NCBI GenBank assembly: GCA_965637545.1
Contig: OZ281500.1
Span: 23,436,001-23,500,000 of the forward strand
From: Phallusia mammillata
Lineage: Eukaryota
DNA length: 64,000 bases
Direction of reading: 5' to 3'
A program made the translations under genes and the position numbers. The notes below the pieces were generated by a model that worked only from the letters and a program-made list of their open reading frames with translations, had not been told where the DNA came from and did no database searches. The stretch's first letter is position 1. Each line of letters starts with the position of its first letter. Positions 54,932 to 64,000 of this stretch are shown in pieces.

Positions 54932-57900
54932 ATGCGAGGGTTTGTCGCGGTGATCGTGATTATATTTCTGGTTCTGCCGGAATCTACGCATGCCAAAGCA
55001 GGCAAAACTGCCTCGAAGAGTGGCCTCGTCGCTGCGGCAAAGAATGTGAGACAAGGGCAAAGCAGCTCATGTGAGTGAATTGAAACAAAGCAAACCTCCG
55101 TTAATCAGAACCTGATTGTACCAAAAAATTTGTCCGGATTAACTGATGTCGATTAGTTTAAGCCTGACCACTACAAATTATTTGTACCTCGAGTTTTGTC
55201 GGAGTTAGGCGCAAATCCGGATTAACCGATGTCGATTAGTGCAAGCCTTAACACATTACAAATCATTTGTATACCTCGAGTTTAGAGGTTTACTGTGCTT
55301 GGAAAAATATATGTATTGTAAAAATACACAAACAAAAAACAATAGGCCTGACATTAAGTATACTTGTGTTAGGCCCAAGGCTAACACTTAGGAAGTACCT
55401 ACTTAGTTGTAGCGATAACCATTTGTCTGGAGGTCGACATTTACATTTGAAAACAACAACACGAGCAAAAATCGTTTTTGGTTAGCTGAACTTGTCCATA
55501 CAAATGCAAGATTCACGGACCATGTAGAAATTTTAAGGCGAAGCCTATATTTAGTCACCTCATACCAATTTAAACAAAATTTACCTAAAAGCGATTTCCT
55601 ACATCCCCAAATGACAAAGAAACAAAAATATGTTAATATAATGAAGGACGACAATAGTTTTATTTATTCTTATGTTCAGCTCTAAAGGTTAGGCTTCAAC
55701 GCAAATATTACAATTTAAGTTATTTACAAATTTATCTTTTCCAAAAACACCTTAAATAATAAGAGTGTTAAGTTAACAACAGTTCAATATTTTTTAGCTG
55801 GCACTGGAGCAACAGCCGAGAGCAGGTCGACTGGATCTTACAGCAGACGCAACAGAACGAATACACCACTACAACAGTTGAAGGAAGATATTATGGACGG
55901 GTACGATGCAACCATGGCACCAGTCATCCACCATGAACAGAACGTCAACATACGAGTCGGAATTACTTATAGACAGGTCAGACTCAACCCAAGTTTGTGG
56001 TGTTTAAGTGAGTGAATTTAATCATGCAGTATTTAAAAGCTCTTTGTGGGACTGGCGTACTGTGATTTGTATGTAAGTGTGCCATGATAAACGGATCAAA
56101 TATGCCATCGTGTTCAAATTGATGTTATTGATCATTCTCACGGCCTAACAGGCCAGCAAACAGGCACCAATTCATTTAACTGTCACTGTATGAATAAAGC
56201 GCTAAAATTTCAGAGCTGAACAGCTGGGGACGTAATATCTAATAGTGACGTCATTGATTTCTGGGTTGTCACGTGATGTAAGAAAAGGCGTACTAAAGCG
56301 ATTACGCAAACCAGTTTGGTTGTAAAACCCTAACAGACAGAGAGAGTGGTACAAAGAAAATGAGAGCATACGTGACATGTAACTAATATTCAGTTTGCAA
56401 TTTCAGCTACCTGCATTTTAATTCGATTTGCAAACAAAACAAACAAGGCAGAACCGCGTGTTGTGGGTTGTACAAACAAACTGCTACATTTGTGACAACA
56501 GAAAAACGACGAAAACAGGTTGAGATTCGTAAACTGACACCAAGAAAACGGTAACTTTGCCCACGGCGCGGCCAGTTTGGCATCAAAAATGCATGATGAC
56601 ATTAAAAGGTCCAATTTGAAACAGCTTCCTCGCAAAAGGATCAAGTTTTACCACAAAGCGGTGCAAAGCGCTGAATAATTTATCAAAGGGCAACATTAAC
56701 GCGACCCAGTTAGGGTATTTTGAGGTTTTCCAAGCTTGAAAACAACTGAACTTCGCCCTCCACTAAAGATTTACGAACACAAAAGGGGAATTCTATTACA
56801 TAAGTTATGTTGTTACGTCATAAACCCGTCATAAAGGGTGCTTTTCGACATTACAATCCCAGAATTGCGTTGGAATTTGCAAAGTATGATTGACAGCACA
56901 AAGGATGACGTGGCCCACTTTTCCACGAACGCGTTTAAGGCATTTTAATAAGTAGCTGATCTAGACAACTTGCGGTGTAGCTCGGCGCCTTGTTGAGCAG
57001 ACAAGGTAAGGTAGATCAATTTTCTCTTGTGTATTGATAAGCAAGATAATCACTTGCAGTTAATTGAAACCGTTTTCAAGGGGACCTAAGATTATCATCT
57101 CCCGAGTCCGGACAAACAAATTAATATACATAAGAAAACAATGGCAGTTTCGGTATTCATTATGTTGTCGATCTATTTAAAAGAAGTGCCGACAAAAACG
57201 AAATGTTTTATCAAGGCATATTGACTTGCATTTTTATGGTTTATCAAAAGCGGAAAACTGATTGGTTTATTTTGGCAGGTTTTGGATTTGGATGAAAAGA
57301 ACCAAGTGCTGAAGAGTTTGATCTGGTTACGACTTGTCTGGAACGACATCCATTTCATGTGGGATCCAGCTGACTACGCTGGTTTGGACGAACGTAAGTT
57401 TATCAACAAGAAAACCACAAGAGCCATATGTGGGAATGTTTGGTGACCGGCTGATTCGGTGTGGCGCCTTAAAGGGGTCTGGCGTACTATGATTAATAAT
57501 TATATGAGTGTGCCGTGATCGCTGGTCTGCATGGGCGCTTCACAGGGCTGATCCCAGTTATGAATTTAAGTTCCTCTTGGTAAACCTAGAACAGCAAAGG
57601 GACGCCTACACTTCGATGAACGTAAATAGTAAAACGAATTGACAGAAAATTTAATCAAAGTTGCAAAAGTGTGAAAGTGTGAAAGTATTAACCTTTTAAA
57701 TGTTCATAGAAAATGATTTTTGAAAGCATTTTAAATACCGTCTTCCATGTCAACTATAAGGTTCACGCATCTTGCGGTCCAAAATAGTTGCATAATTTTG
57801 GACAGTGATTCTTATGCTATAAACTTAGCAAGCCCAGTGCGTTCTACTAAAAAAAAATCGCATGTCAAACTCTCATCAAATAACGACCGCGTGTCCCGTA

Positions 57901-60900
57901 CATAATCACGTGACAATATTTTCCCGTCTTTTTTATAGTGGAGATTCCCCACTCTTTGGTTTGGATGCCTGACATCGTGGTTTATGAGGAGATTGGGGTT
58001 CGATCCTACGCCCCTCGACTCACACACGTTAAAGTGAGGCACGATGGGACGGTTCAGTACCAGGAACCAACTTCTATTGAGACTTCGTGCAGCATCGATA
58101 CTGCTTACTTCCCATTCGATGTTCAGGTGAGACATAATGGGTTACAATAGGGACTTTTTTTCACATTAATATTTCGTTGTAATGTTTTATTGGGTTTGTT
58201 TTGTATGTTTTTTGTGTTTTTTTGTATTTCCTGCTTCCTTTAAATTTCTTGATAAATGTCTCAGCGCCCCAAAATGTGAACAAAAACCACTGTACGAAAG
58301 TACAAGTATCAAGAAAACCCATGTCTACAAGCTTGAAATCCAATTTGCACTGCTACTATTACAAGCACAGAAAATATCGAAAATTTAACGATTCTAGTTT
58401 CTCGTGCAAACAACCCTGTAATTTTGTTTTTCTTCAAACAAATGATTGGGCTGCGATTTACGATCCAGATGCAATTAAACAGAATATTCGATTAACTGAG
58501 ACGCAATTATTCTCGGGTTCAGATCTGTCGCATGACGTTCGTGTCCTGGTCGCAACCCGTGACCCACGTTGACCTTTCGAGCGACCGGGAGTCATGGAAA
58601 CTGTCACGTGACACAAAGTCGTATTTCATCAACACCGGCGAGTGGAAATTGGCGAAGATCGGCGTCAGGAAAGTGGTGAGATAAGAAACAAAACACTGAT
58701 ACTTTGGTGGCTAAGATGGATACATTCATAACTGGGATCAGACCCGAAGCGTCTATCTATGCAGACCAGCGATAACGGCACACTCATTCATAAATCATAG
58801 TATCCCAGCCCTATTAAAAGCGTATAGCCTGCGGTAGAATTCGAACCCACGACAGGAGTCTTTCCGGAAAATGCGCTCGTAGAGAAGTTTGACAAAAGTT
58901 TTGGGAGTATTAAACTTGGCAAATCTCTATATTTTTCCTTTAAAAAACGATTTTGAATTCGTTGGTTAAGAATCTAATTCATAATGCATTAAGCACTTAC
59001 AAAAATAAACCGCCCACCCAAACCACACACGACCTGCAACTTAATCCTCCAACATCAAAATATCGTCGTAAACTTGTCAACGTGCTCATCCGATTAACCG
59101 AAACATCTTTGCAGGTTCGAGATTACGGAGCGCTGGTGAACCGTAAAGCTAAAACATTGGATGAGCTTCAAGCGACACTCATGAATGGCACCGCCACTGA
59201 AAGGTGAGATGGAAAATGGTGTTGAACCAAAGAGAAACGAGCGCACAATGTTATAAACCGAAACGAAAACAGTATCCAGGGTGCAGACAGGGCACAATAT
59301 TTCTACCTATACTCCCAAAGTCATGTAGCCTATATGGACAATGCCTTGTCACTAGCTGTACTAATCAGACCTTACAAGTCGAAACAGTGTGTACTTCATT
59401 TAATGACTGAATGATTTAATCGGAAAAAAAACGAGAGGAGCACCTTCATGGCTTCAGCTACGATACAACACATTAAGAAATAGGGGGCTTGGTTATACAA
59501 CCACTTAACGAAATTGCCACGTTATACCTTTCCAACATGAATGATAACCAATAGTGTCCACTTTGTCAATGCATTTTTTAATGTACGTATTAAAGTCCAC
59601 ACATCATTCTCTTTCAACAATAATGAAGAGTTTTTTAACACGGTGAACAGATCTTCAATGAGAGTTTCGCGCTTGTCATGCGGCAAGCTATGTTCAAGGA
59701 AAACATAAATGAGTAACACACAAAAAAAGTCTCATTACTTAATTAACATGACCTCTAAGCGTTCGAAAAATACCACAAAAAATGGGCAGAAACGTTTTGG
59801 CCCAAAACTAACTTTGAAAAATCATTTTGGAACACGTACAAAATGTGACGGGTGCTGATCTATACTTAGTCACCACTAAACGTTCGAAAAACCTCCAGAG
59901 GCAATTTTCGCAGGTACATTCTACCCAAAACTGACTTAAAAAGTCTTACGTGTAGTTTGGATCATGTACAACGGGCGGGCGCTCTATGAGGTAGACCTAG
60001 TCTGTATCTTGAGAAGTGGCCAAATATTGAAAACTTAACGATGTTAGGAATATGATATTGATCCGAAACTCGATTAAAAATGCAACCTTGTCCCAATGCC
60101 AACACATTCGACTTTATTAACCTGTCAATCATTTGTAAGGCTGTGATAGCTATAGCAGATATTTGGCGGCGGACAATAAGAATAAACGCGTGCTGCTTTA
60201 CAAATAGACTGACAATGTAGTTTATCACACACACAGAAATTTTTTAGCCTTTAGTCCAAACCGAATCTTGAATTTTTGTGATACAGTAGACCTCGGTTAA
60301 TCCGGACCCGTTTGGATCCAAAAATTTGTCCAGATTGTGCGAAGACCTGGATTAACCGACGTCGGTTAGTTAAAGCTTTACCACATTACAAATCATTTGT
60401 ACCTCAAGTTTTGTCCAAATTAGAGGAAGATCCGCATTAACAGAATCCAGTTTTACCAAGGTTTACTCTATTATAGCTTTTTCGATACATATTGGTGTGT
60501 ATATTCGTTGGCAGTAGACCTTGATCTCAATAACTCAACACTATTTCGTTGTACTTAGTCCGACAAACGCTACAGATAGCCCAGAAGGCACAACAACGCA
60601 ATCTCCTATCACCGTCGGACCGCCAAAAGTTGAAAACATCATGGATTCACCAACACAACAAATAGAGACGATGTTACCTGGGAATCATACAGTCACAGAA
60701 AGCATGTATGCAGAGGTGAGACGGATTCTTCTAGACCCAGTGTGGATTGGGTTTTGTTTGAGTGCAGACAATACTTTTGGTAGCAGGATCGAAAATTTTG
60801 TATTTCAAATTTTCTTTTTTGGTCAAGCATAGAATTGAATTATATTTAAATACGACCGAGTATGCCTATACCGGCGATATATGTGTGTTTTGCAACAAAA

Positions 60901-63620
60901 AGTTTAGGTTGGATAAGCTTTTACCATTATTATTATTTTCCTTGGTAATTTGTTAATTCATCGGAGTGTTAGATAAAGTTTGTTAGTGTAAAGATAAATT
61001 CTATTTTGTCCATGACGAAGAATAGTTGCAAAGTTTTACAATGGAACAAGTCGTGTGTCCTATAAGCTTTCGGGAAGTCACTCTTTTTGTGATGTTACAC
61101 AGAGTTTTAAATGATTTTATGAGAAAACATTCAAATTAAAGTTCGACCTTCACAGGTGATCTTTACACTGGTGGTGAGGAGGAACTCATCTCTCTACATG
61201 CAGAGTATGCTCTTCCCAAGTATCATCCTAACCACTGTTGCTCTTCTCGGCTTCTACCTGCCTCCGGAGTCGGGAGAAAGGATCGGACTCCAGATCACAA
61301 TCCTCCTTACTTTTATGGTAAGCTACTAAAAAAGCTCTTACTTAAATGCTCCTGACCAAAAATGAGGTTTCTCAATACAATTGATGGCAGTTCCAATACG
61401 GACAATGCTTTCAGTACCGTATAACCTAGGGGTTCACGTACCCCGATGAGTAAAAAACATATTCCAAGTGGGGTGCAAAGATGCTTCATCACTTCAGTTA
61501 GAGAATAATAGTTTCGTTCCAGAAAGTACAGAAGAATTGGTATGTTAGTTTTTAGATGCAAAGCATTTGCACTTAATTTGTATTGAGAAAACATTTTAGC
61601 CTTGGTTGGCAAATGCCAAGGGGACAATGTAAATGTAAGCTGTTTTGAAACACTAAACGGACAAGAAAAGTAGCTCAAAAATAAAATTCCCAGAAAACTT
61701 GTGCACATATACATTGTAATGCGGACGTTTCAACAATCGCGTTTATCATGGTCAGTGTAGTGTTGAACTGAACTTATGCACATGGGGAAATTCCACACAA
61801 GTAAAACACGATAAACGGTGTGTCGCAGGTGTTTCTGCTTGCAGTGGGAGAAATGTTTCCCGCTTCAACCGGCCCCTACTTGGGAGTGTATTTCGTCATC
61901 TGCATGGGGTTACTCGGGGTCAACCTGGCTATGACGGTGATGGTGCTGCACATTCACTTTAAACCAGTCGTGAATAAACCCGAAGGAAAACGACAGAAAA
62001 CTTCCCCCAAGAAAACCAGAATGAAAAGGTGCGTAAAAATGAATGGTCGCGTGCGAAAGAATGAAACGGTTTCGCAAACGAGTATTGTGCAGTCAACCGT
62101 AGCAAAACGCATTGCTTTGTGCCAGTTGTCAAGACTAGATGATAAACTTAGGAAATATTTTACAGTCCATACGAAACCATTTTGAGCTCTGGTAATTCTT
62201 TTTTAATGAACTACTTTGAAATGAAGTAACTGTATATTATGAAGAGGCTGGTTGTATAAACTCTCTATTGTTTAAAACCGTATCGAATCTAGGTTTACTC
62301 TAACCCTAATCTAAAATAGATTTGCTTTAGCTGCAATAAATAATTCAAACTAGGGTTCTTAGTTTGGCAACGTTTTAAATTCAACAAGCAAATGTCTCAC
62401 AACAGTTACGCAGTCCAGCAAAAGACCAGTTTTAATTTGACATCTGATAAGAAAAGGAGTTCTTTGGCAAATGCAACTACCTATAGAAAAATACTGCTCT
62501 CAAAAATCTCAATATTTTCCATCAGATGCGCCGTCTCCTGTTGCGACAGCGACTTTAGCGGCGACGACGAAAGCTGCGTAAAAAAAACAAAGCGGAAAAA
62601 ACGGAACGGTTCCGCAATTCCGCGTCATTACCGGAAATTCCTTCAGTTCTGCGATCGATATTGGACACTAGGGGAGCGTGGTTCGCGCTGGATGCAACCT
62701 CTGACTGATGACGAAGACGATTACGACGATGATGACGTCATCTCCGGCTACGAATCGAACTCCAACGAATGCACGTGGTCGGATTCCCGGGAAATCGCGG
62801 GAACGGAGAAAGTCCCGGCGGATTTGCAGAAAAATTCCGAGGAAAAACGGGAAAGGAGTTTTTCCGCGATTCCCGATGTAAAGTTTATCAACGAAACTGG
62901 CAAGGATTCGATTGAAGAGAAACAGAAAAGGTTGGTGACAATTTGCTCCAGTATATAGAAGCACATGCCACCGGGTAAAGTAAAATACAGATTAAAAGAC
63001 GCACTAAAGCAGTTGAGAGCCAAGTCTACATATAAAGGGCAAAAAAGATTAATGCAGACTATGAAGTGAATAAATTGTTAGGTGACCTTTATAAACGCAA
63101 AAGTTTACCAGTCTTTACACTGCAGCTAAGGGAAACCCAAAATATACATAGATAGAACTTCGAATTGACCTTTCAACGCCTGTAAACAGTTGCAATATTT
63201 TATATAATCGTCAGGTGCTCTCATATTTCGTATGATAGACAGACAAAAACGACACATAAAAAGGTTCGCGAAAAAAGGATTCACAGAAAAAAATTAATAT
63301 TAACAATCGATAACTACCAATAGCGTAACTCAAATTTGCTTTATTCCAGCGCAAGCGTAATCAACCTCTCAGCGCCCGAACATTTGGCGGCAAATCACCA
63401 TAACAACGGACTCAACAGGGGAAAATCCACCGGATGTCTAGAAGTGCTCAACCGTGACGCCCGTAATCGGTCAAGCGGATCGATCGTTAGTCTCGCGGCA
63501 GAGAAAAAACAGAACCAGCAAAAGTACGAAAGCAAGAGCGACACCGAGCGATCAAACGTGTTGCGCCATCGAGTGTTGAATTCAATCACTAATATGAAGG
63601 GATTCACCAAAGTCGCTAAG
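54932..63620 (+). CDS. Cys-loop pentameric ligand-gated cation channel subunit (nicotinic acetylcholine receptor alpha7/9/10-like or 5-HT3-like; lacks vicinal Cys), 3' end (M4) off-window
   Basis: Exons 54932-55070, 55798-55976, 57279-57393, 57939-58126, 58523-58675, 59115-59203, 60559-60715, 61156-61317, 61829-62028, 62526-62930 and 63350-63620 are all GT-AG with consistent phases and give 686 codons without a stop. Features: signal peptide MRGFVAVIVIIFLVLPESTHA; LKEDIMDGY helix; DLDEKNQVL..WLRLVWND..F.WDP; loop A WMPDIVVYE; Cys-loop CSIDTAYFPFDVQIC (C-x13-C); loop B FVSWS; GEW; M1 LFPSIILTTVALLGFYLPPESGER; M2 IGLQITILLTFMVFLLAVGEMFP; M3 YFVICMGLLGVNLAMTVMVLHIH; long M3-M4 loop ending FTKVAK at a donor site. 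Confidence 0.92.
55086..55295. mobile_element. pogo/Tigger-like MITE, eroded copy with internal duplication
   Basis: aaacctccgttaatc...ccggattaac(t/c)gatgtcgattag twice...gaggtttactg. Confidence 0.65.
57420..57585 (+). mobile_element. Family T repeat, 3' body and terminus
   Basis: gggaatgtttggtgaccggctgattcggt...gctggtctgcat...gctgatcccagttatgaatttaagttcc. Confidence 0.75.
58712..58880 (-). mobile_element. Family T repeat, internally deleted copy
   Basis: taagatggatacattcataactgggatcagacccgaagcgtc...agcctgcggtagaattcgaacccacgacaggagtctttccgg. Confidence 0.75.
60284..60468. mobile_element. pogo/Tigger-like MITE (TA TSD)
   Basis: ta-CAGTAGACCTCGGTTAATCCGGA...TTACCAAGGTTTACTC-ta. Confidence 0.7.
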
Positions 63621-63694: not shown

Positions 63695-63960
63695 ATTGTG
63701 ACGTCAGAATAAAATATTTTATGACGTCATGACGAAATACTCAGGAATAATTGTGACGTCAGATTGGAGTATTTGTGACGTCAAATTGACATGTTTGTAA
63801 AGTCAGAAAGAAATATTTGTGACGCCAGATTGGAATAATTGTGACGTCAGATTGGAGTATTTGTGACGTCAGAATGAAATATTTGCGACCTCAGAATCAA
63901 ATATTTGTGACGTCAGATGAAAATACTTGTGACGTCAGATTGAAATGTTTTGTGACGTTA
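63695..63960. repeat. 22-bp minisatellite (about 11-12 units) built on the TGACGTCA palindrome
   Basis: Unit approximately ttgtgacgtcagattggagtat, with 8 perfect TGACGTCA sites and several degenerate ones. Confidence 0.9.
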
Positions 63961-64000
63961 GACTAAATCCTTGATAAGCTATTGCTGCCAGGCATAATGT

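Follow-up and report, generated by a model that had tools for sequence, protein, structure and literature searches.

An enlarged, sequon-bearing loop C in a cation-type Cys-loop receptor subunit of the ascidian Phallusia mammillata

The DNA analysed here, a 64,000-nucleotide stretch of the Phallusia mammillata genome (contig OZ281500.1, forward-strand positions 23,436,001 to 23,500,000; henceforth the window), carries close to its end the gene for a transcribed, cation-type Cys-loop receptor subunit of this ascidian, in which the tip of loop C is extended to 75 residues between its two tyrosines. Closure of this loop over the agonist starts gating in the well-studied Cys-loop receptors, and it is also the main docking site for peptide toxins and many drugs. 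On balance we lean towards a joint reading: that the gene belongs to a tunicate clade of receptors in which the hairpin stems and most residues of the pocket are kept, that a glycan-bearing insert tunes the capping of the ligand, and that its length in Phallusia arose by lineage-specific expansion.

Across the spliced exons the loop reads EWKLAKIGVRKV/VRDY, 75 residues, YAE/VIFTLVVRR (slashes mark exon borders), or in longer context ...GEWKLAKIGVRKV/VRDY ... YAE/VIFTLVVRRNSSLY, and the two tyrosines are residues 262 and 338 of the 765-residue model. The length of the insert and its three sequons, NGT, NAT and NHT, are as given in a preliminary description of this DNA; its composition is 35% Ser, Thr and Pro taken together, with 9 acidic and 4 basic residues, and the density of sequons (three in 75 residues) compares with a single one in the rest of the extracellular part. 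Two exons encode it, one of 89 nt (59115-59203; ...tttgcag/GTTCGA...TGAAAG/gtgaga) and one of 157 nt (60559-60715; ...tacttag/TCCGAC...GCAGAG/gtgaga), and both have the canonical splice sites ascribed to them (AG acceptors, GTGAGA donors). That both exons are needed to keep the frame holds for either one skipped alone; together they make up 246 nt, so that double skipping would preserve it. The interval originally assigned to the feature covers the two insert exons, and the exon of the transmembrane helices M1 and M2 (61156-61317) lies outside it.

No cysteine occurs among the 82 residues encoded by the two exons. When the three introns that lie between 58676 and 61155 were translated in all forward frames, no alternative loop C exon with Cys-Cys appeared; the only CC there sits in an unrelated frame of 52 residues that has no loop C context and was rejected as a short Cys-Cys exon. 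Neither insert exon has a Pfam match. The second of them is single-copy at the protein level in the 240-Mb genome and has single-copy depth in a DNA sequencing run, unlike the intronic repeats that adjoin them; an origin of the insert from a repeat or mobile element was rejected on the same grounds, there being no second copy, single-copy depth in the DNA run, and no tandem repeat at the DNA level.

The whole gene comprises 12 exons separated by 11 GT..AG introns, with an open coding sequence of 2298 nt for 765 residues. Exons 1-11 lie inside the window, exon 12 past its end:

Exon 1, 54932..55070, + strand: start codon, signal peptide MRGFVAVIVIIFLVLPESTHA, clade motif GKTASKSGL, phase-1 donor T/gtgagt.
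Exon 2, 55798..55976, + strand: N-terminal helix and first strand of the ligand-binding domain; matches PF02931 positions 2-34, weakly when taken alone.
Exon 3, 57279..57393, + strand: loop D IWLRLVW, with the equivalents of 5-HT3A W91 and R93 present; PF02931, 27.4 bits.
Exon 4, 57939..58126, + strand: loops A and E and the first cysteine of the Cys-loop; PF02931, 53.4 bits.
Exon 5, 58523..58675, + strand: second cysteine of the Cys-loop, loop B Trp (FVSW), loop F, GEW, and beta9 as far as ...GVRKV.
Exon 6, 59115..59203, + strand: first loop C exon, with VRDY, the first 25 and two-thirds codons of the insert and the sequon NGT; it ends in phase 2.
Exon 7, 60559..60715, + strand: second loop C exon, Ser/Thr/Pro-rich, with NAT, NHT, IMDSP...TESM and Tyr-Ala-Glu.
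Exon 8, 61156..61317, + strand: beta10, pre-M1 Arg-Arg, M1, PPESGER and the first half of M2; PF02932, 35.1 bits.
Exon 9, 61829..62028, + strand: end of M2, M3 and the start of the cytoplasmic loop; weak PF02932 match.
Exon 10, 62526..62930, + strand: cytoplasmic M3-M4 loop; open frame with AG/GT borders, collinear with the orthologue of Clavelina lepadiformis.
Exon 11, 63350..63620, + strand: cytoplasmic loop, continued.
Exon 12, positions 1369-1608 of the neighbouring locus L002, equivalent to 64369-64608 on the window scale, + strand: pre-M4 helix, M4 and the stop codon.

Both ends of the model have counterparts in the orthologues of Clavelina and Styela clava discussed below: the first exon shares with them the motif GKTA[ST]K.GL and a phase-1 first intron, and the C-terminal part of the gene has the motif EEWKSVARAVD...F.R.Y in common with both. 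Collinearity with the Clavelina orthologue in blastp begins in exon 2, at about residue 69 of the model. The M3-M4 loop (62526-63620 and L002 1369-1500) is about 330 residues long, with an acidic run DDEDDYDDDD and a Lys/Arg/Glu-rich part before M4; its motif SAIP...FLQFC.[KR]Y is present also in both orthologues.

Transcription of the insert is seen in three small RNA-like sequencing runs from one study, whose contigs are restricted to the exons and some intronic repeats. A fourth run (X4), which contains 85% of the sampled words of the window in continuous coverage, behaves as genomic DNA. Contigs of the RNA-like runs contain the GT..AG joints 57393>57939, 58126>58523 (in a contig of run X3), 58675>59115, 59203>60559, 60715>61156 and 61317>61829. 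The three joints that build the insert into the message (58675>59115, 59203>60559 and 60715>61156) are found in all three of these runs, and a single 710-nt contig passes through 58517-58674, 59114-59201, 60557-60713 and 61154-61316; the splicing path proposed for the insert, from 58675 by way of 59115 and 60559 to 61156, is thus present in RNA-like contigs at every joint, and the DNA run has none of the listed exon joints. The joint that would skip the insert, 58675>61156, is found in none of the three RNA-like runs, the contigs of which may drop minor isoforms. The single mismatch in contigs that continue past 62028 fits a following exon starting with ATGCG. Read coverage of the model leaves out exon 1 with its junction and the exons after 62100.

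That the gene encodes a Cys-loop receptor, as originally proposed, is borne out by a transcribed open frame that combines the Pfam domains Neur_chan_LBD (PF02931) and Neur_chan_memb (PF02932) with a Cys-loop and a cationic pore. PF02931 extends over exons 2-5: exons 3 and 4 each exceed the 26-bit cut-off alone, and exons 2 and 5 add collinear profile matches. PF02932 covers exons 8-9, and exon 8 exceeds its cut-off of 28.1 bits. The Cys-loop, C-SIDTAYFPFDVQI-C, has 13 residues between its cysteines, includes an FPFD motif and is divided between exons 4 and 5. Four transmembrane helices are encoded, M1-M2 in exon 8, M3 in exon 9 and M4 in the exon past the window. The signature of cation selectivity is complete: PPESGERIGLQITILLTFMVFLLAVGEMFP has Glu at -1', Leu at 9', an acidic residue at 20' and no Pro-Ala-Arg, and the pore motif can be written PPESGER...L9'...E20'. 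Within the cationic branch the single exons differ in their closest solved structures. Exon 5 matches 5-HT3A and nothing else (E 0.0017), and the best PDB match of exon 8 is again 5-HT3A (6e-11); the best matches of exon 4 are nicotinic acetylcholine receptor (nAChR) alpha9 (7.5e-12) and 5-HT3A (7.4e-11), and exons 3 and 4 both score slightly higher with nAChR alpha4/alpha9 than with 5-HT3A. A search of the ESM Atlas with exon 4 yielded only generic fragments of the ligand-binding domain and was uninformative. The residues that follow the insert, Y-A-E-x-x-F...V-x-R-R, constitute a 5-HT3A motif seen in dozens of 5-HT3A proteins.

The preliminary description had taken alpha7 as the comparator and regarded the insert as replacing the vicinal Cys-Cys of loop C. 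The pair of nAChR alpha subunits (Y-x-C-C) is indeed absent from the window gene and from every member of its clade seen; exon 5 and the motif after the insert are, however, of 5-HT3A type, and since 5-HT3A has no Cys-Cys pair either, to speak of its replacement is not apt. A genome-wide scan with the Pfam profile of the ligand-binding domain gives at least 41 matches at E<=0.001, from which about 15-20 Cys-loop receptor genes are estimated, a small repertoire to which the tunicate clade contributes at least three.

This clade emerges from a HMMER scan with exon 8, in which its full-length proteins are 73-90% identical to the window gene in M1-M2. All of them are from tunicates (Styela clava, Clavelina lepadiformis, Ciona intestinalis and Phallusia mammillata), and their automatic names are inconsistent, ranging from alpha-9-like, beta-3-like and acr-16-like to 5-HT3A-like and uncharacterized. 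Roughly the next hundred matches after them are vertebrate 5-HT3A, the exceptions being three fused fish predictions and one unnamed sequence, all of which hold 5-HT3A-like units. A maximum-likelihood tree separates three well-supported clans, namely the tunicate sequences (support 100/99), vertebrate 5-HT3A, and the alpha7/alpha9/alpha10-like nAChRs; within the first, the window gene is joined with the Clavelina protein P0151 (100/98) and then with the Styela protein P0004 (99/99). The Clavelina and Styela genes are both nested, in antisense orientation, in a gene for a dynein heavy chain of about 4264 residues, which extends over the entire locus fetched for either species (L011, L012). By sequence and position the orthology of these three genes, from three ascidian orders, is secure. 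As to the wider affinity, midpoint rooting, the ranking of the matches, the ranking of structural matches in Foldseek and a slightly higher identity all favour HTR3, and the closest characterised relatives of the clade appear to be vertebrate 5-HT3A rather than alpha7. An anion-type outgroup was sought in four further receptor loci of the genome, where the motif-screened frames all looked nAChR-like; the multi-unit proteins among the matches, which include a flatworm protein, were rejected for this purpose as not defensible.

Two further genes of the clade, paralogues of the window gene, are found on another contig (C1), at 22438001-22455000 (+) and 25100001-25120000 (-), some 2.7 Mb from each other. 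An additional intron, without an equivalent in the window gene, divides the M1-M2 exon of both. The Phallusia mammillata database entry P0155 agrees with a paralogue locus at about 97.5% identity, 7 of the 11 aligned segments being 100% identical.

The enlargement of loop C is a property of this clade as a whole. From GEW to the pre-M1 Arg-Arg, 128 matches of 5-HT3A or nAChR-like type have 26-29 residues; the members of the tunicate clade have 35, 59, 62, 63, 69, 72, 75, 75 and 84, and the window gene, with 97, is the longest. What had been described as a peculiarity of one gene is therefore shared with its two paralogues and with the members from Ciona, Clavelina and Styela, and in every full-length member seen the enlarged loop is placed on one or more dedicated exons. 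Each paralogue has a single such exon, with about 46 codons in one and 55 in the other; one of the two loops is strongly acidic. Among the orthologues, Clavelina has one loop C exon, Styela two of 90 nt each in phase 0, and the window gene two in phase 2; as the phase and even the presence of the inner intron differ, this intron is not shared, and the region has been remodelled repeatedly.

On the conservation of the insert itself, which the preliminary description had left for alignments to decide, the answer differs between its ends and its middle. The start, VRDYG.L, is common to Phallusia and Clavelina, and the end is conserved in all three orthologues as [MI]D(S)P, about 10 residues, and T-x-x-M-[YF]-[AS]-E; the C-terminal module of exon 7 can be aligned with orthologues and paralogues alike. 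The middle is not conserved. The additional length of the window gene consists of the Ser/Thr/Pro-rich piece that opens exon 7, and among the three orthologues a Ser/Thr/Pro-rich middle occurs in the window gene only. We infer that an insert common to the clade came first, and that its variable middle was later expanded in the Phallusia lineage, which gave the extra length.

Around the insert, the binding pocket is largely that of 5-HT3A. Numbered as in the human protein (PMC9977066), the residues W91, R93, E130, T180, F181, S183, W184, D205 and E237 are present in the window gene and in both orthologues. F227 is conservatively replaced by Tyr; Y235 is retained in the window gene and in Styela and becomes Phe in Clavelina, so that the principal-face set E130, W184, F227, Y235 and E237 reads E, W, Y, Y, E in the window gene. 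On the complementary face, W91 and R93 are kept, and Y144 and Y154 have become Lys and Gln; across the three genes, Lys stands in place of Y144 and Glu in place of F131, the position of Y154 holds Gln, Thr or Ala, and that of W196 holds Asp, Glu or Lys. By these alignments the principal face is intact and the complementary face partly changed. With the loop E tyrosines, F131 and W196 all changed, binding of serotonin is not implied; an amine-type ligand is plausible. Since most of the 5-HT3A pocket residues are kept, the insert probably tunes the capping of the ligand rather than abolishing it.

The orthologues of Clavelina and Styela were folded with AlphaFold on an alignment of 52 rows. Both models have a normal Cys-loop fold with visible M1-M3 helices and a mean pLDDT (predicted local distance difference test) of 83 and 81, and the best structural matches of an orthologue model in Foldseek are 5-HT3A. 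Strands beta9 and beta10 are modelled with confidence and the first half of the insert with low confidence (44-57), until, directly after [MI]D(S)P and just before beta10, a short helix is predicted at a pLDDT of 63-81. Its counterpart in the window protein would be about SPTQQIETML. The contigs of runs X3 and X4 depart from the reference at four sites in exon 7 and at three in exon 9, each a synonymous third position; the chance of four synonymous out of four in exon 7 is about 0.003, for a small, haplotype-derived sample whose sites are possibly linked.

These features can be joined into a mechanism. The stems of the hairpin and the residues in contact with the ligand, the Tyr before the insert and the Tyr-Ala-Glu after it, are kept, and loop C would still cap an amine-type ligand. 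The insert would leave and rejoin the hairpin at its tip: its first part, poorly conserved and Ser/Thr/Pro-rich, is probably disordered and is predicted to be N- and probably O-glycosylated, and its last part would form the conserved short helix and a linker back into beta10. Around the entrances of its pockets a pentamer could thereby bear as many as five bulky and hydrated excursions with glycans on them, which would load loop C and so alter ligand access, the energetics of capping, kinetics and pharmacology, and might keep large ligands out.

Several observations weigh against this reading in one part or another. That the three runs are RNA is a guess, and they come from a single study, with contigs blind to minor isoforms. 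The tree is unrooted and has no outgroup, for which reason a sister relation to HTR3 is not claimed, and phmmer at full length gives the Clavelina orthologue equal scores with nAChR alpha4 and with 5-HT3A. The loss of the loop E tyrosines (Y144, Y154), together with F131 to Glu and W196 to Asp, detracts from the 5-HT3-like pocket. Glycosylation of the insert is a prediction from sequons and composition, and the structural statements on the window protein are carried over from models of its orthologues. Finally, the middle of the insert varies both in sequence and in length among the three orthologues (40, 52 and 75 residues), which would equally fit a neutral spacer.

Such a spacer is the foremost rival, and one to which we assign a real but clearly smaller likelihood. 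The tip of loop C would be permissive to insertions, the middle would be neutral, disordered, hydrophilic filler, only the conserved ends of the insert would matter, since they hold the hairpin together, and the richness in Ser, Thr and Pro as well as the sequons would be by-products of drift in a solvent-exposed loop. The middle does differ freely among relatives, over spacings of 35-97 and with acidic, Asn/Ser-rich or Ser/Thr/Pro-rich compositions; the orthologue models have low confidence there, and the inner intron, in phase 2 in Phallusia, in phase 0 in Styela and missing in Clavelina, points to repeated remodelling. However, the polymorphisms of exon 7 are synonymous in four of four cases, three of which fall in or at the edge of the variable part, the enlarged loop has been retained across three ascidian orders with no shrinking back in any full-length member, and three sequons in 75 residues are dense next to the one in the remaining extracellular part. 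A more far-reaching and rather improbable case is that of an ascidian family of HTR3 co-orthologues whose loop C has become an appendage with a function of its own, a mucin-like glycosylated arm in Phallusia; it could then act on the orthosteric site as a tethered lid or auto-modulator, or bind an extracellular partner as a docking arm. Gating through the conserved returning helix would, if this were so, have no counterpart in characterised pentameric channels.

The remaining rivals are less probable still. Exons 6 and 7 might form a regulated cassette, skipped together in some tissues or stages to give a subunit without loop C, which could not form a principal face and would serve as a structural or dominant-negative partner; their joint length of 246 nt between phase-0 introns would allow this, the loop C splice variants of insect GRD and pHCl (PMC2064938) set a precedent, and the NCBI label 'isoform X1' on the Styela orthologue means that further isoforms are predicted there. 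We nevertheless hold it unlikely: the joint 58675>61156 occurs in none of the three RNA-like runs and the inclusion joints in all three, and skipping would delete both pocket tyrosines and parts of beta9 and beta10, with likely damage to the fold. Slightly less credible again is a shield, a glycosylated excursion evolved to keep peptide toxins or lectins from docking on loop C; the preliminary description had proposed toxin resistance, beside a tether or sensor, as a possible role. Loop C is where three-finger toxins and alpha-conotoxins bind, glycans near it give resistance in some snake-resistant mammals, and the middle of the insert evolves fast; but there is no known toxin pressure on an ascidian 5-HT3-like channel, and the polymorphisms are synonymous, not diversifying. 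Moreover, the equally long inserts of relatives have few or no sequons and are in some cases acidic, so that glycan shielding cannot explain the clade-wide feature. An artefact or a dying gene, whether through mis-assembly, retained intronic sequence or pseudogenisation, has in its favour only the oddity of the insert and is the most improbable of all; a pseudogene or assembly error is contradicted by the coding sequence of 2298 nt open over 12 exons, the spliced contigs in three runs, the agreement of the independent DNA run with the assembly, the exclusively synonymous differences, and the syntenic orthologues in two other ascidian orders.

Apart from the insert, repeats were noted in the introns of the gene. 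Within the intron that follows exon 11, a unit with TTGTGACGTCAGA, including the palindrome TGACGTCA, occurs nine times at 63696-63962, at a spacing of about 22 or 44-55 nt, where 0.05 matches would be expected by chance in the whole window. Three stretches at 57364-57691, 58676-59003 and 60152-60479 reach a summed contig depth of 10^4-10^5 in the DNA run, compared with about 250 in their flanks; from this very high depth and from their presence in the RNA-like runs, they are abundant dispersed repeats. Loose ends of these intronic repeats look tRNA-like, but ARAGORN finds no tRNA there.

A 2023 survey of 5-HT3 homologues, in which the longest loop C insert has 17 residues, found no tunicate homologue (PMC9977066), and a 2019 study of nAChRs left out whatever sequences of Ciona or amphioxus clustered with HTR3 in its neighbour-joining tree (PMC6354393). 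Neither a description of the tunicate clade nor one of a glycosylated loop C insert was found in the literature searched, most subscription journals lying outside it. With that same scope, the statement that characterised nAChR and 5-HT3 subunits have no such insert stands; novelty across the superfamily does not, as Drosophila GRD already has 75 residues at the loop C site (PMC2064938). With a loop C tip of about 14-75 residues between the pocket aromatics, compared with about 5-7 in 5-HT3A, and with most pocket residues retained, the clade amounts to a natural experiment on how much load a capping loop can bear and on what an appended module does to access and gating. Should a rooted tree confirm their affinity, its members would rank as the nearest relatives that vertebrate HTR3 has among invertebrates, and also as candidate targets for the effects of 5-HT3 antagonists, which, as cited in PMC10136630, are reported to disturb Phallusia development; the link is speculation.

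Among characterised systems, the window protein appears to resemble 5-HT3A most (mouse 4PIR/6HIQ, human 8AXD), a cation-selective Cys-loop subunit likewise without Cys-Cys, with which it shares TF.SW in loop B, IW.R in loop D, F.N.GEW, Y-A-E, the pre-M1 Arg-Arg and PP[DE]SGER. It differs in the tip of loop C (75 residues against about 5-7), in its total length (765 against about 480 residues), the cytoplasmic loop being far longer, and in the replacement of Y144, Y154, F131 and W196. With nAChR alpha7 and alpha9 it has the superfamily and the cationic branch in common, and the distance from the GEW Trp to the first loop C Tyr equals that of the alpha7-like protein P0011. Unlike these, the window gene has no vicinal Cys-Cys of loop C, either in its exons or in its introns, its loop D Arg and Y-A-E are of 5-HT3 type, and the branch that separates its clade from the alpha7/alpha9/alpha10-like proteins has a support of 100/99.

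A precedent for the loop itself is found in insects, where Drosophila GRD has its 75 residues at the same site and Tribolium GRD and pHCl have loop C inserts that arise by splicing (PMC2064938); both a long stretch at this site and a loop C length set by splicing are thus known there. These receptors belong, however, to the insect GABA/glycine-type branch, so that the insertions are independent. For GRD and pHCl, no report came to light of a conserved returning helix or of a composition both rich in Ser, Thr and Pro and sequon-bearing, the comparison being drawn from published descriptions. The relatives within the clade have the gene structure, the motif GKTA.K.GL and the dedicated, enlarged loop C exon or exons in common with the window gene; the latter exceeds them in loop C spacing, with 97 residues against 84 in the next longest member. 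In its own group the insert ends in M-[YF]-[AS]-E and the loop D Trp is retained, whereas in the other group of the clade most members end it in H-W-[ST]-[DEQ] and most have Arg at the position of this Trp.

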